Translations under genes and position numbers: made by a program | The notes under the pieces: generated by a model | What the model saw: the letters and a program-made list of their open reading frames with translations, nothing else | The model's database searches: none | What the model was told of the DNA's origin: nothing | DNA from: Mantamonas sphyraenae STR306 | Lineage: Eukaryota; Protista; CRuMs | DNA length: 64,000 bases | Direction of reading: 5' to 3' | Assembly (NCBI GenBank): GCA_026936335.1 | Contig: JAPMXV010000031.1 | Span: 186,001-250,000, forward strand | Shown here: positions 35,318 to 49,089 of the stretch, one piece after another | Numbering within the stretch: position 1 is the first letter of the stretch | How the letters are laid out: each line of letters begins with the position of its first letter

Positions 35318-36984
35318 ATGGCCAGCCACTACCGCACTGCCGCCTCAATTCTGGCCAAGCTGGAACACAAAAACGGCGCCGGCATTCGTTCACTGGTGTT
35401 TGATGCCCATGTCCAGAACAAGAAGCTCACCATGGCCCTGGTGAAGCAGACACAGAAGTGTGCGTGATGTGCTGCCCATCCCTTACATGGACTCCCCACC
35501 TCACACCCGTTCTGCCACGTGATCCATACACACACGCACACACAGACAAACCGGCCATAGAGGCGTTGGTGTGCGAGGCAGGCCTGGAAGAGAGGCGGAA
35601 AGGTGTAAAGCCAGTGCAGCTGTTCGATGTGATGGTGTACGACGTGCTGTTTGGAAAGGGCAAGCTGCAAGGCGGAGGCAAAGCAAAGCGAAAGGTGGCG
35701 GAATGCGTGGAGGCGCTGAGGGAGGCCATGGAGCACGTGGATGTGCAGGCGTTGGTCTCGGAGGGCGACGAGCATGCGTTGCCGCGCTATGCACGCGTCA
35801 ACCTGCTGCTCACGACCGTGGAGGGGACCATCGAGTGGCTGGAGGGCAAAGAGGAGTGGACACGTGTGGACGGCGTGGAGCAAGTCATTGCTGCAGCGGC
35901 ACAGGCGACGGAAAACAAGGCTGCGAACCGGATCTTTTGCCTGGACACACACCTGGACCACTTGCTTGTGTTCCCCCCGGGCACAGATCTGCACGACCAC
36001 CCGTTGGTGGAAAACGCGTGGCTCATTCTGCAGGACAAGGCCAGTTGCCTGCCTGCGGTTGTGCTTCAGCCACCGGCAGACACGGTCGTCCTGGATGCAT
36101 GTGCTGCTCCGGGCAACAAGACGAGCCATGTGAGCAGCCTCATGGCAAACACAGGACGTGTGTTGGCGTTTGACAAGTCTGCCCGCAGACTGGATTTGCT
36201 CAAGCGGCTGACGTCAAAAGCCGGAGCGGAGAACATCGAGGCTTTGTGTCAGGATTTCCTCACCGTCGACGTAAACTCACGGCCATACTGCGATGTCACT
36301 CATGTGGTGTGTGATCCATCCTGCTCGGGATCAGGGATGGTGGCCCACGACGAGTTGCAAGGGCAGCATGACAAGAAACGACTGCGGGCCTTGGCCAACT
36401 TTCAGTACCAGGTCGTCGCACACGCCATGACGTTGCCCAGTGTACAACGCATTGTGTACTCCACCTGCTCGGTGTATGAGGAGGAGAATGAGCAGGTTGT
36501 ACTGCGCCTGCTGCGAAGATGGGGCGGGCACTTTCGGCTCGTCCCGGCTACTCTGGCCGCCCCCTGGCCCCACCGAGGCCATCTGGTCAAAGGACTCACC
36601 AAACAGCAATCGGAGTGTTTGTTGCGCGCAGACATTCGTCGCGACGCCACAATTGGCTTCTTTGTGGCGTTGTTTGAGCGCAAGCCGGTCGCAAAGCGCC
36701 CGCGATCGCCTCCTCTTACAAGGAGCCCTGGACAAGACAGTGACGATGAGGACGAAGGGGAACTCGTGATCTCCACGGAAACCTCTACGGAGGACATCGA
36801 CAACACACATCACGGTGATAAAGAGGTCGATTCGTCGCAGGCAAGCAGCGCGGACCTGCCTGACACGCAAACAGCTTCAACACGGACACATGCTCCACGT
36901 ACGGACAATCGTGATGAGCTGCGGTCTGACAGTGCTGCAAAGAAGCGCAGGAAGCGTCGGAAGAAGGTGGCTCGGTTGAGGTGA
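35318..36984 (+). CDS. NSUN5: LSU rRNA m5C methyltransferase (NSUN5/Rcm1)
   Basis: LPRYARVN, LILQDKASCLPA, DACAAPGNKTSH, DPSCSGSG, VYSTCS...ENE, GFFVALFER; one intron after the MASHYRTAAS...TQK exon. Confidence 0.9.
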
Positions 36985-37619
36985 AAAAAAACGCGACAGG
37001 TTTTCGAAGCGTGCCGCCCTCGCTCGCAAACATCAAAATCATTCGCAAGTGAGTTCAAGACATGCACCGAGGAACACGCCCAGAGAGACCTATGCATCCA
37101 CATAAACGCAAGGGAGTGTGCTGCAAACCCTTTGCACATCTCCTTCTGCATGGACGGAGGGCGAGTTTGTCGCATTTGCAGAAGAACTTTCGCGGCCCAA
37201 ACGTTGCTTGTTCCATGGCCCGCATTTTGAGCAATCCGTGGTGTCCCTCGTGTTCACTTCGTGCATGTCGTTGTGTATTCACCACACAGTCAGCACACAC
37301 TGTTTGTTTTCCTCCCGCCTGTTTGTTCTGAAGCCAAGCAGCCTCGGCGGAACGACTGGGTGCAAAATCGGTTCCCTCCGTGCCTGCAGCTGCACTGCAA
37401 AAAGCCACCATCGTACATGGATCCACACCTCGTCCGTCACAGTGAAGATGTGCTCCACAGTCATCGCAAAGTCATCTGGAGGTGGTGATATGTGCATAGG
37501 GTGTACTCTGGGCCCGTATGGTGCTTGGAGAGGGCAGAGCACCAGAGAGATTTTTTTCCTTCGCTTTTTCTCGGGTTTGCAAACTCACCCGAACAAACCC
37601 ACCTTTTCTTTGCGCAGCA

Positions 37620-40600
37620 ATGGATGCTCGAAGAAACTCCACCGCAAGCAGTGGGGACTTCGATCTACAAGGAACTTCGATGGGCGCCGCCAAAGCCCAG
37701 GGGAAGCAGCAGATGTCCTTTGCCATCTCGGGCCACAGGAGTTGGCTGCGCCGGCTTTCCGGATTCCTCCAAGCAAGCAAGCAGTCGACTTTCCGCGTGG
37801 TGTTTCTCCTCATGAAGGTGGACAAGATCAACTTGACGCCTCTCCTGTACCTCTCGCTCCTGGTCGAGCACCTGCAGTTCTTGGTCTTCTTCCTGTCGCC
37901 ACAGCTCGTGCCCGCGGCGATGCAGGCCGATCCGTCCTACAAACCGCTGCGCGACCTCACGCTGGCCTTCAACGTGACCACCTTTCTTAGCAGTGCCGCC
38001 GATGTGTGGACGATGTACTGGTTTGTGGCTATTTGGATGATGACGATGGTCGTTCTTCTGGTCTACCTCGTCATTGCCGTCCACAGGGACGCCTACATCT
38101 TTGTCTGGGTGCTCAAGATCCTCCGGGTGTCTGTCGGCCTCACCTCCAGCGTCCTGTACCTTCCCTTTCTGCGTACGATGGTGATGTCCATATTTATGGC
38201 GCCCGCCACAGCGGGCTCTTCTGTGCTGGCCATTTTCTGCGTCTGCGTTCTTTTTGCCGTCGCCTCGGTGTCCAAGCTGATGTACTTTGAGACTTCTTAC
38301 AACAGTGCGGTTGCCACCGCTCGTTCACATGGCCGTGTGGACTTTGCCTGGATCCTGGTCAGGACGCTTCTGGTTCTTCTCTACCCCATTGTCAGCGCCC
38401 TTGCACTGCCGGCCCAAACCATGTCCATTGTCCTCGGCGTCGCCCTCATCCTCGTCTCTGTGCTCATGGTCGCCTTGCGCCTGTTCTTTCTCCCGTTCTA
38501 CATGCGTGCCACCAACGAGCTTGTGGTCAGCTTGGCCGCCGCGTTGGTCTGGTGCAGCGTCGTCAGTCTCGTGGCTGTCTTTGTGCCCACCATGGGCTTT
38601 GGCACAATCTCCATGATGCTTCTCATTGGCTCCCTGGCCACTGTGGCTTTGGCATGGGGTGGCACGCGTGTTTTCTTCAAGACGTACTTTCTCGACGCCC
38701 TGCGCACCCCGGTGCCCCAGATCGAGTGGGGTCCTAACGGCGACCTCGTCGTCTACGTGCAACACTCCCACAAGCAGAAAGCCAAGCTGCGCGAGCGTGA
38801 CTACGCTGCAGCAATCTCCAACACCGACGACGGCATCAAGAGGACGCCGGCGGTGCGAACGGGCTTCGATGCCCTGGACATCTCGCGCGACATGTCAGCC
38901 ACCCACAACACCGGAGGTTCTGGGGCCGCTGCAGGCGACGACGGCTCAGCCAATCTGCACGACAGCTCCGCGGGCGCTGGCAGTGGCAACGAGAGTGGCA
39001 CCGCGCAACAGCGGGTTGTGTCAAACCTGGTCAATCGCAACTTTGCGCGTCTGCACATCGAGGCCGGGCCTCGCTCCTCCGACATGGTGTACATCAACGG
39101 CAGTCCCTTGCGTCTGCTGTCGCCCATGCATGCGGAAGTGTTTGCACGTGTGCTGATGCACGATCGCAGCCGCGACGTCGTCCACAACGTGCGCAACTTT
39201 TTCGAGGCCGCCCTTCAGCTCTACCCGCGCAGTGGGCCTCTGATCCTTGCCTACGCACGCTTTCTGGAGAGCCAGGCCAGCAACAGCAAGGCGCAGCAGG
39301 ACGTGGTCGCTCTGTACGAGCGCATCGAACGCCTGGACGACCTCGCCTTTGACATCGAATTCTTCTGCTTTGCCGCCCTGCGGATCCGCAAACGCAAGTC
39401 TGTGGCCATGGCACTGGCGTCGGATGAGGAGGATGCTCGCGATATCGGCGTGGTTGCCCACCTCGAGTTGCAGCAGAATCTGAGTCGTGCGCGCAATTTC
39501 CACTTTCGCGCCCTCAAGCAGCTCCACTCCTTCTGGCAGATGCTGCTTGCCGACGAGGTGAACCTGCACCTGTTGCAAACCTGCATGCACCGCATCGTCA
39601 ACGCCCAGAAGTCGGCCAACGCTGCGTTCTCCGCCCTGTTGCAGCAGTATCCAAAGGCACCCAGCATCCTTAGAGCCTACGGTCGCTTTGTCAAGGAGGT
39701 GCGCAGCGACGCAGCGACGGCGCAAAACTTTCTGCGCCTGGCGGAGCAGTACGAACAACAGCAGCAGGCGCAGATGCGCACCAACTCGAGCAACATGGGC
39801 GAGGAGTTCTCCCAGCTCAAGGTCAAGACGATGATGACGCTGGCCGTCAACACCAGCGGCACCATCAAGGCAGCACGCAACCTAGGCCTGTTGGCATACA
39901 GCGAAGACGAGCTCATCGACACCAACCTGGGTGAGATCGTCCCGCACACTCCGGTTCTCGAAAACGCCATGGGACTGCTCAACATGGTCAAGGTGGGCTC
40001 CCAGGAGGTCATGGTCATGGATCGCAAGGACCAGGCTCTGTTGATGGAAGTCAACACAACCCATCTGCAGGTGGCAGCCGCCTCTGTCGACGTGCGCTCC
40101 TTCTTCCAGCAGCAGCAGCTGTTCAGCGTCAAGCTGTCCATCCACAAGGAGTGGCAGGAGCCCATTCTGTTTGCCACCATGCCCGTGGACAACCTGGACG
40201 CCGCCGATGACGACCGCGACGGCGACGTGCCGGACAGCCGGTCTCAAACCAGTGGCCTTGGCCGATCTGCATCAGCGTCCGCATTCTTGTTTGACGCCGC
40301 CCCGAAGTCCATTGTGGTCGGCATGACCAAAAACCTGCGCGCCATCCTCAAGCTGCGCATCAAAGACGTGTACGGGTGCAACCTGTCCGACCTGCTGGAG
40401 GACCAGGATGCCATGTACGACCGATCCGGCGCGCTGTTGAACTCCTCCTCCTCCACCTCATCCTCCTCCTCTGTCACGGGCAATGGCACCAGTGGCCCCG
40501 AGTCTCTGTCTGCGGTCATCCAACGCATGGCTCGCGACCTTAGCGGCAGTGGCAGCGGCAGCGGTGGCTTCAACAGCGTGTCACGCGGCGAGGTGGTGCC

Positions 40601-43600
40601 GCTGCGTCTCAAGACACGTGCAGGCTACGTGTCTGCCTCTGCACTGGTCAAAGCCATGCCATTGCAGAATCTGGCCATGATTCGCCTGGGCAAGATCGAA
40701 CGTGTGGTGCACCACACCAACGGCGGCTTTGCCAGCCCCAGCCGCTCTGGCGCCATCAGCCCTGCGTCTCACCGCTCTGTGCGCTCCGCCATGCGCAGGC
40801 GTGACTCGCTGGCGTCTTCCAGTCGCTTGCAATTCAGCACTCCGTACGGCCACGAGGGACGGGGCAGCGCAGGCCAAAGTCGCACGAGCAGCCCGCCTCG
40901 CATGCGTTCGCCTCCGCGTCGATCCCTGGACGACGGCGCAGTGCTCATGGAAACCCTGCATGAGCAGGAAAGCGAACACGCGATGGATCGGGAGCAGGAA
41001 CGTGTGGTGGAGCAGCAGTCGGAGCCAACCGAGCGTGCTGGTGCCAGGCGAACGGATGCACCTCAGAACGCACAGCGAGGCCAACGTAGCAACGGACGCC
41101 AGCGAAACCAGCGCAACAATGACACCACTTCAAGTACCAACAGCAACAGCAACAGCAACAGCAACAACAACAACAGCAACAGCAACACTGAGCAAGCAGA
41201 CGCCACCGCCACGACAGCAACCGCCACCTCCAACACCAACGAAGACGTGTCCCGCGGCACATTGTCACCCGTGGGTGTCTCTGGCTCCATGAGTGATGCC
41301 AGCGATGGCCTGTCGGACGGCGGCGCAGTATCCACAGGCGCAGGCGCAGGTGGCCCCATGGTCACTGCAGATCACCAATCGGCGGTCGTGTTGCAACAAG
41401 CCATCAAAACAATCACGTCTCGACCAGCCAACGCACGACGCGTCGCTGGTGGTGGTGGTGGCGGCGGAGGAGGAGGAGGATTGGCACGCGGCGCTCGCAA
41501 CAACAGCGAGGATTCGTCGCGACGAGTGTCCGATTCGTCGGGATCGGGTGACTCGTCGGGCCATTCGTCGGGATCGTCGGGCACCATGGGTGTGCGTCGA
41601 CGCATCAAGAACATGCGAGACAAGCTGAGTGACGAGTCGTCGGACAGCATGACATCGGGCAGCGTCAAACAGCTGCGCAGGGTTGTCTACGTCGTGTTGG
41701 CTCTCCTCTTTGTCTCTCTCGTCAGCAACTACGTGGCCCAGGAGTCATTCCTCTCCCAGGCCGAAAACAAGCTGGTCGCCGTCTCCGACGTTGGCCGCCT
41801 GCCCGTCATCGCCAGCGAGGCTGGCTACCAAGGTCAGCTTCTGGATCTTCGACTGCGCAAACTACGTCTCACCACTTTGTTGAACGATTACCGGACAGCC
41901 AACGCCACCTACGGGGCCAATTCCACGCAAGCCAGCACCATTGTCACGCGAATGCGATTGTGGACTCCGTTTGGTGAGGAGACGGACGTGTATGTCGTGG
42001 AAGTGAGTGCCCTTTTGTCGAACCGCGATTTTGACAACAACCGCAAGGCCATCGACGAACTGCGTGAGTTGTTCAACACCGTGCACAAGAAGACGGTGGT
42101 GAAGAACAGCGTCCTGAACAAGGCCGAAAACCTGCAGCTTCTGGCCATCGACCAGAACGTGGACATCAAGGTGGAAGCCACGGGACAAGAGGACAGGCGT
42201 GCCATGTCCTTGCGTGACATGGGCTTTGAGTTCACCGCTGGCCTGGACTTTATGAGCAGCCTCAACCTGACTGTTCAGGACACCCTGGGTGTGGACACCA
42301 TTGAGGAGTATGCACCATGCTACTTTGTGCTCAAGAACGCAGAGAACAACATGATTGCAGCATCCAAGAAGGCCATTGCCGTCGTGGAAAGCAGTGCACG
42401 CTCTGCCGCGGCTGAGGTGAATGTGATCAGTGGCACCACACTGTCCATTGCCGTGGTCGTGGTCGTGTGTCTCATGTGGCTGACCTTCCGTCCCGTTGTG
42501 ACCCACATTGCCATGGAGAACCACTTTACGCTCGAGACCTTCCTGGACATCCCTCGCCGGTCCATTGTGACCATGGTCAACCGCTACCGACGTCTCATCC
42601 TGGCCCTGGAGGAGGAAACACGCATGGTCGACGACGGCGACGGCGACGGCGGTGCCATGGACGAGGACGAGCTGTCGGTGGGCGAAGCCGCCGAACGCGC
42701 TTCGGTGGCCTTTTCCGAAACCAGCAAGTCACAGAAGAGCCAGGACAACGGCGAAAGGAAAAGCAAGGGACAAGGAAGCAGTGCCAGTGGCGGCGGCTCG
42801 GAACGCGATGGCAGCAGTTTGCACGACTCTTCGGCGGGAAGTGACACGGGCAGCACAGGAAAGAAGAAGCGCAAGAAGAAGAAGAGTGGACGCAGTCATC
42901 ACAGGCGTCTTGTGCAGGGACGTGGAGATGTGGTGACCAACAGCATGCACACACGCTACGTGGTTGCGTTTGTGGCCTTCTTGGCCATTGCCGTCACCTC
43001 GTTCCTCGTTGTGTCCGACTCTCAGACTCGCATGCAGGGCGTGCGGGCCATGATCAACAAGCTGGGCAGCACGCACGACCGCGCTTCGCAGGTGCCCCTT
43101 TTTGTCACCAAACTCGTCACCTCGCACACACGCGACCTCTACAATGTCAGCCACTCGCAATTGCTGACCACCAAACTCAACCTACGAGCACGTTACGCCG
43201 AGCTGTTGAAACTCAGCGACGAGGCAGGTCGAAGTGCGGCGATGGAGGCATTTTTCTTTGAGACAAATCTGTGTACGGTGTTCCAGTGCGACCACGAGGA
43301 CGAAACCAAGCTGGGGGCTTCTGGATTGCACAACCTTATGCGACAGTTCATGGACTTGACCGAAGACATTCTGGAGATCGATCGTAGCGTGAGAGTGTCG
43401 TTCCAAACACGAGGGGTCACGACGATTCTGCGTGTGTACGATGGCTTGGTGTGGCCTGCGCTGCGTCGGTTGGATCTCATGCTGCGCACAGAGGCACAGG
43501 CGTTGGAGGTGGAGGGTCGCAACGTAGGTCTGGCTCTCATGTTCTGCGGTATTCTTGTGCTGATTCTGGATCTGGTGCTCATCTTCACCCCGATGATGAC

Positions 43601-45656
43601 CGTGCTCAACTCGCAAGCCAAGCACGTGGAACACATGTTCCTCATGATCCCACTGGAAACCCTCATCCAATTGCCGCACGTGCTCAAACTCTTGGGCATC
43701 GATGTCATCGGGTTGCAAGGCGCATTGCCCAACGCCGCCACGGCCAAGGGCAAGGGCGACGGTGAAGGTGGCAAGGGCACGGGTGACGTCACACAAGATG
43801 CAGTCGACGCCTGGGTCAACGAACAGCTGGAGGTGGGCGAGGGTTCCTCGGGTGAGTCATCCGAGTCGAGTGTCAAGGATGTGGGCGTGATGGAAGTGGC
43901 AGCCGCAGCCACCGCGACAATGGGTGGTGGGAACCCAGATACTGCAGTCTTGGCTTCCACGGAAGCCAGGGCGTTGGTGGAGGCTGTCAAGGCGGCGGAG
44001 GAGGTGGTCGGGGAGGTGGAAGGCAGTGGAGAGGAGGCGGCGGAGGCGGAGGAGGCACGACAACAGGAGGTGATGGCTGTGGGCATGCAACTGTTGCGAG
44101 ACGAGTTGAATCTGGACGAGCGTACGACGATTGGCAACACGAGCCGCGGAAAGGAGGTGGAGAAGGTGGAGATGGCTACGCTGGGACAAGGGAGGGCCAC
44201 AAAGCAGCAGCAGCAGCAGTCGCTGGAACCCGAACACGCAATTGACGTGGCATCCGTCGACGGAAGCAGCGTGGGGAGCGACGAAAGCAGTGACAGCGAG
44301 TCCGTCACGTGGAACAAGCGACTGGGAGAGCTGGTGAGCGACTTTCACGGGCTGTTGTCCGATCATCCCAAGCGACTTGCGCTGATCATGCTGGTGATCA
44401 ACATGGCGTGGTGGACGGCGATGGTGTTTGTGACGCCTGTTGAGCGTGTGATGGCCGTGCAGAGTGTGGACTCCATCACAAAGGCAATCACGCTGGTGGG
44501 CGGTTCCTTTGTGAGTAGTCTCAGTGCGCTGGGTGTCATCCCTGCAACCATGCCTGAGGTGCTGCTTCTGGGAAGCACTCGCCTGGGAGTGGTGCGGGAC
44601 ATCAACCTGCTTGCACACGCCATTGTGTTGCCCGCAAGTGTCCTGTACGGCTACCTGATCGGGTTCAAGGTGGATTCGGATGTGGTTGTGGCGTCGTTGT
44701 TGCCTGGCCTGGTGGGTGCAGCCATCGGCACAATGCTGCCTGCCAACGAGTTGCTCGTGGTGGTAGTTGCCTCGGCTGTGGTGGGCTTCCTCCTGGGCCA
44801 GGTTGTTGCCCTGTACCTGCTCGATGTGGATCTGTCGCAGGAGACGTCGCGCATCGACACACGCACCCGCGTGGAGATAGCTGTGCTGGCTCTGGTGGGC
44901 GGTGTGGCCACCTCTGCGTTGGGCACTGGCATGGGTGCTTTTCTGTACCTGTACATGACGCTGTATTTGCAGATGAAACAAGGCATCGCTGTGAACACAG
45001 CGTTGTGTGCGTTTGCTGCCAACAGCTTGGTGGCGCTGGCTTTCCGTCTGCTCAGTCCGGTGCCGCTCAGTTCCGATCTTGTGGACGTGGCAGTGTTTTC
45101 TGCCCCTCTCACTGTGCTCGCTGGCAACTTGGGCATCTTTCTGGGCGAGATGGTCAGCGACCAGATCATCCATGGTGTGGTGCTGCTCTCGTCTTTGGTG
45201 TTCTTTGTCGTCTCGGTCGCCGTCGTGGCAAGCCAGGACTACTCCGTGTTTGTCACCATCATGCTGCTGATCAACACAGGTGTGCTCAGCTACCTGCTGG
45301 CTGTCGGAGGAAACATCAGGAGTTCAACCATCCTGCTCATCGAAACCAAGGAGGGCAAGGACTTCATGATGCGCGTGCAGCGCGAACGACGTCGCCTGAA
45401 GAAGAAGGCCAAGAAGGAAAGGATCCAGAAGCGTCTGCAGCGGCAGGAGCGCAGGGACAGGTTGCTGCGCAAGGCCGAACAGGCCCGGTTGGAGCACGAG
45501 CAGCAGCAAGCCAAGAACGGCGCTTCCTCGGGCGGCAAGCGCGTGCGCATCGACCGCGCGGCGGCGGACGACCACCAAAGTAACAGCAGTGGAGGCAATG
45601 GTGCACGTCCAAGACGTGCTCGTGTGGGCGGATTCACAACAGGGAACGCAGATTGA
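37620..45656 (+). CDS. Giant TmcB/TmcC-like polytopic PAS-domain sensor with C-terminal TauE/SafE-like membrane domain
   Basis: N-terminal multi-TM block (ARSHGRVD, LPFY); TPR-like FWQMLL...QYPKAPSILRAYGRF; two PAS-like segments; disordered linker; two TM-loop-TM modules ending FRPVV...FLDIP and FTPMM...FLMIP; then ~9-10 more TMs resembling TauE. Single 8-kb exon. Confidence 0.75.
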   Translation: MDARRNSTASSGDFDLQGTSMGAAKAQGKQQMSFAISGHRSWLRRLSGFLQASKQSTFRVVFLLMKVDKINLTPLLYLSLLVEHLQFLVFFLSPQLVPAAMQADPSYKPLRDLTLAFNVTTFLSSAADVWTMYWFVAIWMMTMVVLLVYLVIAVHRDAYIFVWVLKILRVSVGLTSSVLYLPFLRTMVMSIFMAPATAGSSVLAIFCVCVLFAVASVSKLMYFETSYNSAVATARSHGRVDFAWILVRTLLVLLYPIVSALALPAQTMSIVLGVALILVSVLMVALRLFFLPFYMRATNELVVSLAAALVWCSVVSLVAVFVPTMGFGTISMMLLIGSLATVALAWGGTRVFFKTYFLDALRTPVPQIEWGPNGDLVVYVQHSHKQKAKLRERDYAAAISNTDDGIKRTPAVRTGFDALDISRDMSATHNTGGSGAAAGDDGSANLHDSSAGAGSGNESGTAQQRVVSNLVNRNFARLHIEAGPRSSDMVYINGSPLRLLSPMHAEVFARVLMHDRSRDVVHNVRNFFEAALQLYPRSGPLILAYARFLESQASNSKAQQDVVALYERIERLDDLAFDIEFFCFAALRIRKRKSVAMALASDEEDARDIGVVAHLELQQNLSRARNFHFRALKQLHSFWQMLLADEVNLHLLQTCMHRIVNAQKSANAAFSALLQQYPKAPSILRAYGRFVKEVRSDAATAQNFLRLAEQYEQQQQAQMRTNSSNMGEEFSQLKVKTMMTLAVNTSGTIKAARNLGLLAYSEDELIDTNLGEIVPHTPVLENAMGLLNMVKVGSQEVMVMDRKDQALLMEVNTTHLQVAAASVDVRSFFQQQQLFSVKLSIHKEWQEPILFATMPVDNLDAADDDRDGDVPDSRSQTSGLGRSASASAFLFDAAPKSIVVGMTKNLRAILKLRIKDVYGCNLSDLLEDQDAMYDRSGALLNSSSSTSSSSSVTGNGTSGPESLSAVIQRMARDLSGSGSGSGGFNSVSRGEVVPLRLKTRAGYVSASALVKAMPLQNLAMIRLGKIERVVHHTNGGFASPSRSGAISPASHRSVRSAMRRRDSLASSSRLQFSTPYGHEGRGSAGQSRTSSPPRMRSPPRRSLDDGAVLMETLHEQESEHAMDREQERVVEQQSEPTERAGARRTDAPQNAQRGQRSNGRQRNQRNNDTTSSTNSNSNSNSNNNNSNSNTEQADATATTATATSNTNEDVSRGTLSPVGVSGSMSDASDGLSDGGAVSTGAGAGGPMVTADHQSAVVLQQAIKTITSRPANARRVAGGGGGGGGGGGLARGARNNSEDSSRRVSDSSGSGDSSGHSSGSSGTMGVRRRIKNMRDKLSDESSDSMTSGSVKQLRRVVYVVLALLFVSLVSNYVAQESFLSQAENKLVAVSDVGRLPVIASEAGYQGQLLDLRLRKLRLTTLLNDYRTANATYGANSTQASTIVTRMRLWTPFGEETDVYVVEVSALLSNRDFDNNRKAIDELRELFNTVHKKTVVKNSVLNKAENLQLLAIDQNVDIKVEATGQEDRRAMSLRDMGFEFTAGLDFMSSLNLTVQDTLGVDTIEEYAPCYFVLKNAENNMIAASKKAIAVVESSARSAAAEVNVISGTTLSIAVVVVVCLMWLTFRPVVTHIAMENHFTLETFLDIPRRSIVTMVNRYRRLILALEEETRMVDDGDGDGGAMDEDELSVGEAAERASVAFSETSKSQKSQDNGERKSKGQGSSASGGGSERDGSSLHDSSAGSDTGSTGKKKRKKKKSGRSHHRRLVQGRGDVVTNSMHTRYVVAFVAFLAIAVTSFLVVSDSQTRMQGVRAMINKLGSTHDRASQVPLFVTKLVTSHTRDLYNVSHSQLLTTKLNLRARYAELLKLSDEAGRSAAMEAFFFETNLCTVFQCDHEDETKLGASGLHNLMRQFMDLTEDILEIDRSVRVSFQTRGVTTILRVYDGLVWPALRRLDLMLRTEAQALEVEGRNVGLALMFCGILVLILDLVLIFTPMMTVLNSQAKHVEHMFLMIPLETLIQLPHVLKLLGIDVIGLQGALPNAATAKGKGDGEGGKGTGDVTQDAVDAWVNEQLEVGEGSSGESSESSVKDVGVMEVAAAATATMGGGNPDTAVLASTEARALVEAVKAAEEVVGEVEGSGEEAAEAEEARQQEVMAVGMQLLRDELNLDERTTIGNTSRGKEVEKVEMATLGQGRATKQQQQQSLEPEHAIDVASVDGSSVGSDESSDSESVTWNKRLGELVSDFHGLLSDHPKRLALIMLVINMAWWTAMVFVTPVERVMAVQSVDSITKAITLVGGSFVSSLSALGVIPATMPEVLLLGSTRLGVVRDINLLAHAIVLPASVLYGYLIGFKVDSDVVVASLLPGLVGAAIGTMLPANELLVVVVASAVVGFLLGQVVALYLLDVDLSQETSRIDTRTRVEIAVLALVGGVATSALGTGMGAFLYLYMTLYLQMKQGIAVNTALCAFAANSLVALAFRLLSPVPLSSDLVDVAVFSAPLTVLAGNLGIFLGEMVSDQIIHGVVLLSSLVFFVVSVAVVASQDYSVFVTIMLLINTGVLSYLLAVGGNIRSSTILLIETKEGKDFMMRVQRERRRLKKKAKKERIQKRLQRQERRDRLLRKAEQARLEHEQQQAKNGASSGGKRVRIDRAAADDHQSNSSGGNGARPRRARVGGFTTGNAD

Positions 45657-45696: not shown

Positions 45697-47106
45697 TCAA
45701 AAGTTTGCCTCGATTGCTTTGGCTTGTGCTTCTGTGAGCGTCTTTGGGAAAAGGACGGTAAACTCGACGTAGAGATCGCCCTTGTCAGAGGGATACTCGT
45801 GGTGAGGCATGCCCTCGCCCTCGACCTTGTGAATGAGGCCCGGTTTGGTGACGCCGTCGCGGTTGACAACCACCTCGTGGCCGTCCAGGTGACGGATGGT
45901 CTTGCTGAAGCCCAGGAGGGCTTCCTTGAGGGAGATGGTGCGACGAGTGTGCAGATCCACCGTGTTCTGGCGGGTAAACTGAGCGTGGGGCTCTGTGCGC
46001 AGCTTGAAGACAATGTCGCCTGCGTGTTCGTCGGGCGACTGGTCTCCCGCACCCTCGTAGCGGATTTCATGGTTGTCCGGCATGCCTCGTTCGATGTGCA
46101 CCACCAGCTTGTTTGTGCCTTCGCTCACCTTGTGGCCGTGGCACACGCTGCACTTGGTCTTGATCACGCGTCCTGTGCCGTGGCAATGGTCGCAGTGTGT
46201 TTGCATCTGCTGTACAAACCCAGGCATGCGCTGTGTCACAATGCGTACGCCCGAACCGCCGCACACGGGACACTTGGTCACCGCGTCCGGGTTGTCTGCT
46301 CCTGTGCCTCGGCACTTGGGACAAAGCACTTGTTTCTTGTGTTCAAACTTCACTTCCCGTCCATTGTACACGTCCTCAAGCGTGACCTGCAACGGAATCG
46401 TGGTTGTCGGCCCCTGCTTCTGCTGCTGCCGATGCCCTCCGCCTCCGCCTCCGCCAAAGTTGAACCCGAAGCTGTAAGGTGCGAGCAGCCAAGGTGGGTG
46501 CGATGTCCATCCGCGTGTATGTATGGATGTATGCATGGGTGTGCATGGTGATGTGTGTGTCAGCATAGGTCGGCGTGACGTACAGGGGCGGGTTTTTGTC
46601 ACGGGCGGAATCGTTCCGGCAACGTCATCTCGACGCGGTGCGTGCCCTCTCACCCCGCTGCGCACTGTTCCACACGCACTTTTCAAAGATGTTGAAGGGA
46701 TCCACGCCTCCTCCGCCTCCGTTCTGTTTCTTCAGTCCCTCCTCGCCGTACTGGTCGTAGATCTGGCGCTTCTTGTCGTCGGTGAGCACCTCGTACGCTG
46801 CGCGCATGTTTGCCGGGTCAGTAACGTCCCACCCGGTGCCGATGGTCCACTGCCGATGAGGTGCACCCCCCTCCCACACAACCTACCTGTGGCCAGCTTG
46901 GCAAAGATCTGCTTGGCCTTGGGGTCCTTGTTCTTGTCCGGGTGCCATTTGCGCGAAAGCGAGCGGTACGCACGCTTGATCTGCCGCTTGGTGGCATCAC
47001 GAGGCACGCCCAGAAGCTGGTAGTAATCCTCGTCCGCTGCCACCAAGTCCACAAGCACACTCAACGCCAAAACGCACAACAGGCCGGCGACGATTGCTGT
47101 CTTCAT
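45697..47106 (-). CDS. ER DnaJ/Hsp40 co-chaperone (ERdj3/DNAJB11/Scj1 type)
   Basis: Signal peptide, [11 protein letters not shown] (KWHPDKN), G/F region, four CxxCxG motifs, [15 protein letters not shown]; two introns. Confidence 0.9.
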
Positions 47107-47223: not shown

Positions 47224-49089
47224 TCACCATTCATCACTGTCTGATCCGCTGGCACCCGAAACACCGCTTACGTCGCTGACGCCTGAAACGCCGCTGACCT
47301 CAGCCCCCGCCAGACTGGACTCGAGCATGTCCAGACCCTGGATGGCGGGTCCGTAGTTCGGATTGATGCCCAGGGCAAGTTGGTACAGTTCCAGGGCCTT
47401 GCTGTGGTTGTCCATCTGCTCGTGCAACTCGGCCATCTTTGTGTACACCATGTCTCGGTCGTGCCGCTCCAGCTCCTTCTGCAATAAATTCAGGGCGTCT
47501 TCGTATTTCTCCTCCATCACATCGAGTTGTACAAGGCCATTCAGGGCAAACCAGTTGCCTGCATCCAGCGTGAGCGCGTTGGTGAACGCTTTGCGTGCCT
47601 TTGGACGGCCCTCGGGGTTGTGTAGAAGCACAGTGCCAACCAATCCCAGAGTGCTTGCGTTCTTGGGTACCCTCTCCAAGGCCTCCTTTGCCACCTCCAG
47701 TGCCTCCTTGTAGTGTTGCACCTGGAGGTGCGCGTCGACCAGCCCGCGGTACACAGAGATGTGCTTACTCAGGCGCAGGGCCTTGCGGAAGGAGACCACA
47801 GCTGCGTTGACGTCCTGATTGCTCATGTGGAGGACGCCGTGAAGCACAAGCGTGACCACGTGGCCCGGATCCAAACTCAACGCACGTTCCAGGAACTGCA
47901 TGGCACGCGAGTTCCACCCACGCATTTCGCAGTACAGTGCAAACGCTGTCCAGGGTTCCGGCCTGTGCATGTCCACATTGATCAGATTGCGCGCCAGACG
48001 ATTCAGCTGCGCCTCGGAGCCGCACATCTTCAACACCACCGCGTAGTCGTCCATGTCGTCCACCACATTTTCATCCAGGGCCAACACTTGCTCGAAGCGC
48101 TGTTGGCCCGACTGCAGACGGAATTGAGAGACGTCGTTCTTGGCCTTGGCCAGCAACACGGGCACATTGGGACGGAAGCGGGCAAGCAGGGCATCGATGG
48201 CCACCTGTCCACGGTCTGGTCGACACTCCAGGCTGCTCTGGCTCACATGCATAAACGCCAACGCCAGCGTGCGTTCCTGCTGCTCAGGCTCAGCCTCAAT
48301 GTCCCCCAGCAACTCGGCAGCCTCGGGTGTTTCCTCGCTGCTCTTGTATGTCTGTGTCACCGCAGGCAAGGGCCAACCGAAGCGTTCACAGGTGTCTTGC
48401 ACACCCACACCCAGCTCCGTTAGAGCCAGCATCGCCTCCACGGCGTATGGGCACTCGCTCAACACGTCCATGTACGCCTGGATCGCACGCTTGTCATTCT
48501 GCACATCCACACTGCGGTACAGTGTGGCCAACTTCAGGTTCATGGACACCGAGCGAGAACGCAACGGGATGGATTCCAGCACACGCAGCGCCCCCTCGCG
48601 GTCCTCCAAGCCCAGGTGGCAATCCACCACCCGCATCTTCAGCTCCGCCTCTTTGCAAACCACCTCCTGTTCTCCGTCGCTGCTGCTGCGTGCCACCTTG
48701 TGAATCGTCAACGCTTGACGATAGTGGCTCTGAGTGAGTGAGTGAGTGAGTGGTGTGCTTGTGTGTCAGTGAATGGCGAGTGCGCGCCAAAAGCCCGCGC
48801 AAATCCGCTGCCTTTTCACACTGACCATGGCACGCTTGTACTCTTTGAGAGCAAGAAGTGCGTCACCGTACGCCACGAGAGCGTTGTGATGCAAGCAGAC
48901 GTCGAGAGCAATGGGGCCGGCAGAGTCTTGCAGACGGGAGCTCTTGCGCGTGGCGTGCGCGCCGTCGTCGTCGTTTGGATCGGCCATACCCAGCAGAAAC
49001 GCGCCCAGAGTGAGAGCAGATGCGTGCAGACTGTGTGTGTTGAGTTCACACACGCGTGCGTACAACTGCTGCGGATCGAGGTTGGTCAT
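47224..49089 (-). CDS. ANAPC7: Anaphase-promoting complex subunit 7 (TPR)
   Basis: YGDALLALKEYKRA, LESIPLRSRSVSMNLKLATLY, VLSECPYAVEA, MDDYA, RPEPW, TPR array; one intron. Confidence 0.8.

Follow-up and report, generated by a model that had tools for sequence, protein, structure and literature searches.

A TmcB-like receptor joined in one reading frame to a diverged TauE/TSUP transporter domain in Mantamonas sphyraenae

Why would a membrane receptor carry a permease-like domain at its far end? The question is raised by a single giant gene in a 64,000-nucleotide stretch of the genome of Mantamonas sphyraenae STR306 (contig JAPMXV010000031.1, positions 186,001 to 250,000 of the forward strand; hereafter the window). 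The analysis shows one intact gene in the window, predicted to encode a fused protein of about 2700 amino acids (aa) with about 22 transmembrane (TM) helices. The N-terminal two thirds of this protein is, by the defining Pfam domain, a member of the TmcB/TmcC-like family, and the C-terminal block is, by sequence profile and structural model, a diverged TauE/TSUP domain. Judged by sequence comparison, the architecture is real and recurrent, and what is new in it is the combination of two known families.

Is the frame truly uninterrupted? The gene occupies a single open reading frame (ORF):

37518..45656, plus strand: whole ORF, 2712 aa plus stop, counted from the first ATG

With stop triplets making up 1.7% window-wide, the probability that 2712 codons remain open by chance is ~2e-20. 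The frame has no stops and a coding-type G+C content at third codon positions (GC3) throughout, and the other five frames have 0-9 stops per 100 codons. Overall GC content is ~59% in the window and 59.19% in the published genome of 25.06 Mb in 78 primary contigs (PMC10492846). The public protein nearest to the product comes from Mantamonas plastica. Because GC3 is low over codons 1-100 (0.59, against 0.64-0.85, mostly 0.7-0.85, from codon 101 on), the in-frame Met35 at 37620 may be the true start. It was from this methionine that the original prediction, made by eye, had drawn its one uninterrupted ORF, in the same frame; all the blocks that it listed are present, with coordinates off by a few codons at most. 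Hydropathy gives 22 hydrophobic spans along the 2712-aa protein, arranged as 8 + 2 + 2 + 10.

What, then, is the last group of ten spans? It belongs to the following part of the protein:

44367..45302, plus strand: TauE/SafE (TSUP) domain with ten TM helices, aa 2284-2595, matched by Pfam PF01925 over 44490-45185
45303..45653, plus strand: family-specific conserved post-TM motif, then a basic helical tail, aa 2596-2712

TauE/SafE proteins, or TSUP (PF01925; TC 2.A.102), are standalone permeases of 8-10 TM helices for sulfite, sulfonates and other small anions. When the block is excised (44280-45380), it matches the Pfam TauE profile with 37.3 bits (E 3.1e-9), above the gathering cut-off of 32.6, and seven of nine family members match TauE individually (E<=0.1). 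A phmmer search with the 367-aa block against 1.84 billion representative sequences returned only 33 matches at E<=1e-3; 24 of these were scanned with Pfam, all 24 proved to be TauE proteins, and the alignments span the domain. Block and standalone TauE proteins share a common motif register. An AlphaFold2 (AF2) model of the region 44280-45380, built from 32 sequences (m4e491d985a4d), has a mean predicted local distance difference test (pLDDT) of 91 and a predicted template-modelling (pTM) score of 0.88, and its best match in the ESM Atlas is to a cluster that is 99% PF01925 (TM-score 0.72 by query and 0.87 by target over 294 residues, root-mean-square deviation (rmsd) 2.8). The internal 4+4 repeat of the family is also found: the halves of a subfamily alignment that includes the window match each other with an hhalign probability of 79% (E 1.5e-5, 87 columns). 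The ten spans lie at aa 2287-2595, and the tail behind them has 32 Lys or Arg against 14 Asp or Glu and forms a long helix at residues 320-366 of the model. The assignment to TauE/SafE that was first made by eye, with a block of ~9-10 TM helices and a basic tail, is thus borne out by Pfam, phmmer, the AF2 model and the fold search together.

The larger part of the protein precedes this domain and consists of the following blocks:

37842..38654, plus strand: N-terminal 8-TM block, aa 109-379, from hydropathy, conserved in all paralogues
39135..39827, plus strand: helical TPR region, probably cytosolic, aa 540-770, with AF2 helices at model residues 2-230
39423-39770, plus strand: Pfam TPR_TmcB (PF25474), aa 636-751, 87.2 bits, E 1.1e-24, cut-off 27
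39831..40178, plus strand: predicted PAS-A fold, aa 772-887, from AF2 strands and helices at model residues 233-348 and Foldseek
40311..40712, plus strand: predicted PAS-B fold with two low-complexity inserts, aa 932-1065, from AF2 and Foldseek
40713..41654, plus strand: low-complexity linker, aa 1066-1379, 50% S/T/G/N/Q
41682..42617, plus strand: module 1, aa 1389-1700, consisting of TM9, a loop of ~228 aa, TM10 and an arginine-rich juxtamembrane segment
42960..43667, plus strand: module 2, aa 1815-2050, consisting of TM11, a loop of ~170 aa, TM12 and a conserved juxtamembrane segment

The AF2 model of aa 540-1085 (m91fc0c283f38, ten sequences) shows two predicted PAS folds after the TPR region. 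A Foldseek search with this model against the PDB gave 98 matches at E<=1e-3, the best at 6e-7, all of them tandem PAS-A/PAS-B structures, including AHR-ARNT, PERIOD, DosP, PpsR and HIF-2a-ARNT. Language-model look-alikes of the same region are atlas clusters with TPR_TmcB plus PAS or PAS_9 (score 0.96); a PDB sequence search with it returned only noise. The two modules that follow are built on spans at aa 1389-1407 and 1636-1654 (module 1) and at aa 1815-1833 and 2005-2023 (module 2), and are weakly similar to each other over the TM and juxtamembrane part (hhalign 51%, E 1.6e-4). There are N-x-S/T sites in loop 1, and two cysteines in the module 2 loop are kept in most family members. The linker at aa 1066-1379 is poorly conserved among paralogues (occupancy 0.3-0.6, identity 0.05-0.12). 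The segments after TM10 (42555-42617) and TM12 (43590-43667) rank with the best-conserved stretches in the family, with identities of 0.53 (aa 1651-1700) and 0.45 in the 50-aa windows that hold them; they matched no known family and are candidate signal-relay helices. A Pfam scan of the 2712-aa protein found no cyclase, kinase or other further domain at E<=1. The layout that had been read from the letters, a TmcB/TmcC-like protein with an N-terminal multi-TM block, a TPR-like helical region, two PAS-like segments, a disordered linker, two TM-loop-TM modules and no cyclase or kinase motif, therefore holds in each of its parts.

Compared by Pfam domain, this part of the protein resembles Dictyostelium TmcB and TmcC ('tiny macrocysts', PF25474) in having TPR_TmcB, PAS after the TPR region, multiple membrane passes and no recognisable enzymatic output. 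The window's protein differs from them in its C-terminal TSUP/TauE domain and in being nearly twice as long. According to Muramoto et al. 2005, cited in PMC12750705, Dictyostelium TmcB regulates the cyclic AMP (cAMP) pathway during sexual development.

Are receptor and permease-like domain parts of one protein? They are joined by a linker that, as originally described, is acidic:

43668..44357, plus strand: acidic linker from receptor to TauE block, aa 2051-2280, 43 Asp or Glu against 17 Lys or Arg

The linker has G+C contents of 0.69/0.44/0.74 at the three codon positions, and its own frame is free of stops where the other frames have 4 and 5. The M. sphyraenae genome holds 11 TmcB-like genes, ten of them with the C-terminal block (C-block), and eight of the 11 are single giant ORFs with an identical order of blocks, in which the linker before the TauE block varies in length and sequence. 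In the genes on contigs C61 and C57 the same blocks are spread over two adjoining ORFs with a frame break between them, which could reflect an intron, a frameshift or a pseudogene; these two genes, like the environmental Tara gene described below, were analysed piece by piece. In both (C61, L037, 649-6287; C57, L038, 3425-8840) the TPR/PAS ORF slightly overlaps the ORF for the modules and C-block, in a different frame. The remaining gene, on C18 (1233 aa), ends after module 2 without a C-block and has a TmcB/TmcC-like layout. In M. plastica, PF25474 and PF01925 occur together in three Trinity isoforms of 2177-2404 aa, each annotated as a complete ORF, and these are transcript-level support for the fusion in a congener.

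The architecture also extends beyond Mantamonas. P0008 is a truncated fused gene on a 10.6-kb Tara Oceans contig (46% GC), which carries, on the plus strand, the end of module 1, a short GT..AG intron, module 2, the linker and a TauE domain with a 60-nt intron. Aligned with a paralogue, it is collinear along 578 aa that reach from module 2 across the linker into TauE (E 9e-32, 23% identity). P0002, from a Joint Genome Institute (JGI) metagenome, has its 5' end cut by the contig end and consists of a module-2 remnant (E 7e-9) followed by the C-block (E 1e-42). Neither is a standalone TauE protein, since module-2 sequence precedes the TauE domain in both; each is a piece of a longer fused gene. 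A tree built from 36 domains separates the fused ones, ten from Mantamonas and two environmental, from 24 standalone ones with support of 99 in the SH-like approximate likelihood ratio test (SH-aLRT), and an earlier careful tree grouped eight fused domains with P0002 (support 96/97). These trees show the fused TSUP domains as one clade of single origin. Most simply, a TmcB-like receptor would have fused once, long ago, with a canonical TSUP permease, and the fused gene would later have multiplied and diverged in Mantamonas. The genome also has ~10 standalone TauE genes, of which the one on C71 (L003) is of the same subfamily as the fused domain; a recent copying of that gene was considered and rejected, as the two are not sister groups in the trees.

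Full-length proteins with both TPR_TmcB and TauE were found, in the public protein sets searched, in Mantamonas only. Protein searches by shared 5-mers (with TauE, TPR-PAS and a TPR-to-module-2 profile) gave nothing or M. plastica only, blanks that say little, and scans of JGI metagenomes with a TPR-PAS profile and a group-A C-block profile (group A is defined below) gave no confirmed locus. The literature consulted on TmcB and on eukaryotic TauE/TSUP contained no description of a TmcB-TauE fusion. The architecture recurs in Mantamonas and in the two environmental fragments; the original prediction, too, knew of no description of it.

How much of a TSUP permease remains in the fused domain? 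The signature of the subfamily consists of G-S-F..A-G..G-G-G..A-F-P and A-R-D-F-S in repeat 1, and of G-G..T-S..G-x-G-x-D and T-P-T-S..M-A-x-N-S in repeat 2. Conservation was counted over 62 columns, each with 75% identity or more among 24 standalone relatives, with the following numbers of columns kept:

window: 22/62
group A (window, its closest paralogues on C59 and C15, and M. plastica): 22-26/62
group B paralogues: 11-19/62
standalone proteins: 47-61/62

By alignment, then, about two thirds of the residues conserved in the subfamily are gone from the TSUP domain in Mantamonas. The environmental fused domains, on the other hand, keep the canonical signature, with 42/53 and 45/59 columns; over the same columns as P0008, the window keeps 21/53. 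Because these fused relatives retain the canonical TauE signature, the degeneration is secondary and confined to Mantamonas.

Is the block nevertheless under selection? The two related genes on C15 and C19 differ in their C-block core by 11 synonymous and one non-synonymous codon changes (249 synonymous and 714 non-synonymous sites), a ratio that has P = 3e-6 under neutrality. By this comparison, the C-block is maintained by purifying selection in the C15/C19 pair; the window's own copy has no paralogue as close as these two are to each other. The same pair (C15:328513-335853, L033; C19:254080-261078, L034) is a mosaic of near-identical and old blocks, in which long blocks with a synonymous divergence (dS) of 0.03-0.05 alternate with blocks of dS 0.7-2.1. 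The high-dS blocks are PAS-B, the linkers and the region preceding the C-block. This alternation suggests that chromosome ends exchange sequence, by gene conversion or by patchy recombination.

Before function is considered, two more prosaic explanations have to be weighed. The likeness to TauE could have arisen by chance in a generic hydrophobic multi-TM block, as one might suspect from the whole-protein scan, where TauE reaches 29.2 bits and stays under the cut-off of 32.6, and from the identity to TauE proteins in phmmer, which is just 19-28%; the excised block, however, clears the cut-off, every scanned phmmer match is a TauE protein, the motif register is held in common, and the fold fits TauE models. 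The N-terminal 8-TM block of the same protein, itself examined as a TauE-like candidate and rejected, has no such signal (hhalign probability 0.2%), and a chance match is barely credible. It is also very improbable, if somewhat less so, that two transcription units merely share a frame, or that an internal promoter adds a standalone TauE protein. The 230-codon linker would be open by chance in ~2% of cases, which is small yet not negligible for one locus, and the family does have a member, on C18, that stops after module 2. Against this, the frame is kept at ten loci despite linkers of differing length and sequence, linker GC3 is 0.74, a coding value, compared with an overall GC of 0.53 in the spacer upstream of the ORF, complete transcript ORFs of M. 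plastica span both parts, the Tara fragment is collinear across the junction, and no conserved Met-initiated standalone form is seen.

What might the fused protein do? Its topology can be approached from TM parity and the positive-inside rule. The first block has eight TM helices, and the TPR/PAS region would therefore lie on the same side as the N-terminus. Segments rich in Arg and Lys precede TM9 and TM11 and follow TM10 and the last TM; together with the cysteines of loop 2 and the N-x-S/T sites of loop 1, these flanks indicate that the two large loops probably face outward. The N-terminus, the TPR/PAS region, the linkers and the tail are probably cytosolic, as are both ends of the ten-TM TauE block. 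On this topology, the protein may be a signal-regulated TSUP permease, a reading to which we give a little less than an even chance. A cue would be sensed by the outward loops, the cytosolic PAS pair or both, and relayed by the conserved juxtamembrane segments and the linker; the TSUP domain would be the output, through which a small anion or an organosulfur-type solute crosses the membrane. What the altered Mantamonas signature reflects would then be a changed substrate or gating, not a loss of function. This reading is favoured because the protein has no catalytic output domain and TSUP is its only module with a known type of activity, because the closest fused relatives look transport-competent (the 42/53 and 45/59 columns above), and because the same TSUP subfamily occurs behind cyclic nucleotide (cNMP)-binding domains.

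There are several points on the other side. The window's domain has lost the G-G-G...A-F-P of repeat 1, the Asp of GxGxD and the Pro of T-P-T-S (the loss of the repeat-1 GGG, and with it the degenerate state of the domain, had been noticed by eye), and since only 22/62 columns are kept (11-19 in group B), canonical transport may have been lost. Genuine TauE proteins were in the AF2 input alignment, which biases the model toward the TauE fold, and neither a PDB sequence search with the block nor a Foldseek search of the PDB with its model (E<=1e-3) gave any match, a solved TSUP structure included. On the sensor side, Pfam does not find PAS in the whole protein, and the confidence of the PAS model is only moderate (pLDDT 72.8 from ten sequences). 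All of these weigh against a regulated permease. The TSUP domain may instead no longer transport, serving as a ligand-sensing 'transceptor' or as a structural, oligomerising or targeting scaffold, with the PAS/TPR region signalling to partners; this is the main rival, a possible account, if on balance a doubtful one. It would fit the column counts just given, with mainly glycines and packing residues surviving, as well as the internal repeat signal, which is gone when the fused sequences are compared alone (hhalign probability 1%). The block is still constrained, and so does something, and TPR regions are typical partner-binding surfaces. What speaks against a domain without transport is the near-canonical signature of the environmental fused relatives, which makes the ancestral fusion look transport-competent; moreover, the window and the rest of group A retain the R-D pair, the GG..TS..G.G motif and the repeat-2 Thr and Asn (with most glycines, in the window), and no downstream signalling domain is present to receive a sensor's output.

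If the signal-regulated permease is taken further, one arrives at a class of eukaryotic receptor-permeases not recognised before, in which gating would act directly between an extracellular-loop/PAS sensor and a TSUP-type anion permease, in one direction or the other. Such a class would have arisen once, would be canonical in uncultured marine eukaryotes, and would have expanded in Mantamonas into a fast-evolving, mostly subtelomeric repertoire of sensors for the environment. This wider proposal is rather unlikely as it stands. If true, it would identify membrane transport as the output that has long been missing for TmcB-like receptors.

How does the fused domain compare with known systems? 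It shares with standalone TSUP proteins the profile match, the motif register, the two-fold repeat and the predicted fold, and differs from them in standing behind a receptor of ~2250 aa, in its post-TM motif and basic tail, and in having about two thirds of the conserved residues replaced. Two metagenomic proteins, P0006 and P0025, have an N-terminal cNMP-binding domain followed by TauE, and P0025 also has a C-terminal FHA domain. As in the window's protein, a TSUP domain of the same subfamily is joined to a cytosolic ligand-binding regulatory domain; unlike it, they are 495-635 aa long, have a different N-terminal sensor and a canonical TSUP signature, and fall outside the fused clade. They possibly represent a class of second-messenger-regulated TSUP permeases.

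More distant parallels are found in bacterial CbrA, which combines an SLC5-like transporter domain with PAS and a histidine kinase, and in the yeast transceptors Snf3/Rgt2, Ssy1 and Pho84. Here the analogy is functional only, in that one protein combines a transporter fold with signalling modules; these transporters are of an unrelated family, their domains come in another order, and the window's protein has no kinase. The only solved chain that shares the fold of the TauE model is BacA/UppP (PDB 5oon), with a VIA-align Z of 14.7 (next match 8.2), an rmsd of 3.6 over 244/270 residues and Foldseek TM-scores of 0.45/0.57. BacA/UppP is an enzyme outside the TSUP family, with 11% identity and no profile match.

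Why does the fusion matter? TmcB-like receptors have a wide distribution among protists, TSUP/TauE proteins are no less widespread in eukaryotes, and both are almost uncharacterised. To our knowledge, no TSUP mechanism has been solved, and we know of Dictyostelium TmcB only as a regulator of cAMP signalling. A conserved fusion of single origin gives each of the two families a functional partner, and raises concrete questions: which solute, if any, is carried by the C-block, and is it controlled by the PAS domains or by the outward loops? In this family, one also sees how a canonical transporter domain, once captured by a receptor, is remodelled while selection continues to act on it. Since Mantamonas belongs to the deep-branching CRuMs lineage, the fusion matters for the reconstruction of early eukaryotic signalling. 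As far as we know, Mantamonas is not genetically tractable, which sets a practical limit.

The gene's neighbours in the window are:

35458-36984, plus strand: NSUN5-type ribosomal RNA methyltransferase, upstream
45697-46686, minus strand: DnaJ protein with a CXXCXGXG zinc finger, convergent downstream neighbour
47224-48711, minus strand: TPR protein, downstream

These are housekeeping genes with no functional link to the TmcB-TauE fusion. The long antisense ORFs within the gene itself matched no family.

Where in the genome do the TmcB-like genes lie? Most M. sphyraenae contigs run from telomere to telomere (PMC10492846). Nine of the 11 genes are at most 32 kb from a contig end (on C59, C15, C19 with two genes, C53, C56, C37, C61 and C18), and with ~20% of the genome that near an end, the binomial P for such clustering is ~2e-5. 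The interior ones are the window's copy, on C31 (465,753 bp), and the gene on C57. This distribution suggests that the TmcB-like genes form a subtelomeric, fast-evolving receptor repertoire. The two genes on C19 (C19:254080-267470) stand tail to tail, with stop codons 12 bp apart, and the Tara contig likewise has a second TmcB-like gene tail to tail with P0008 (L040, 2-7795).

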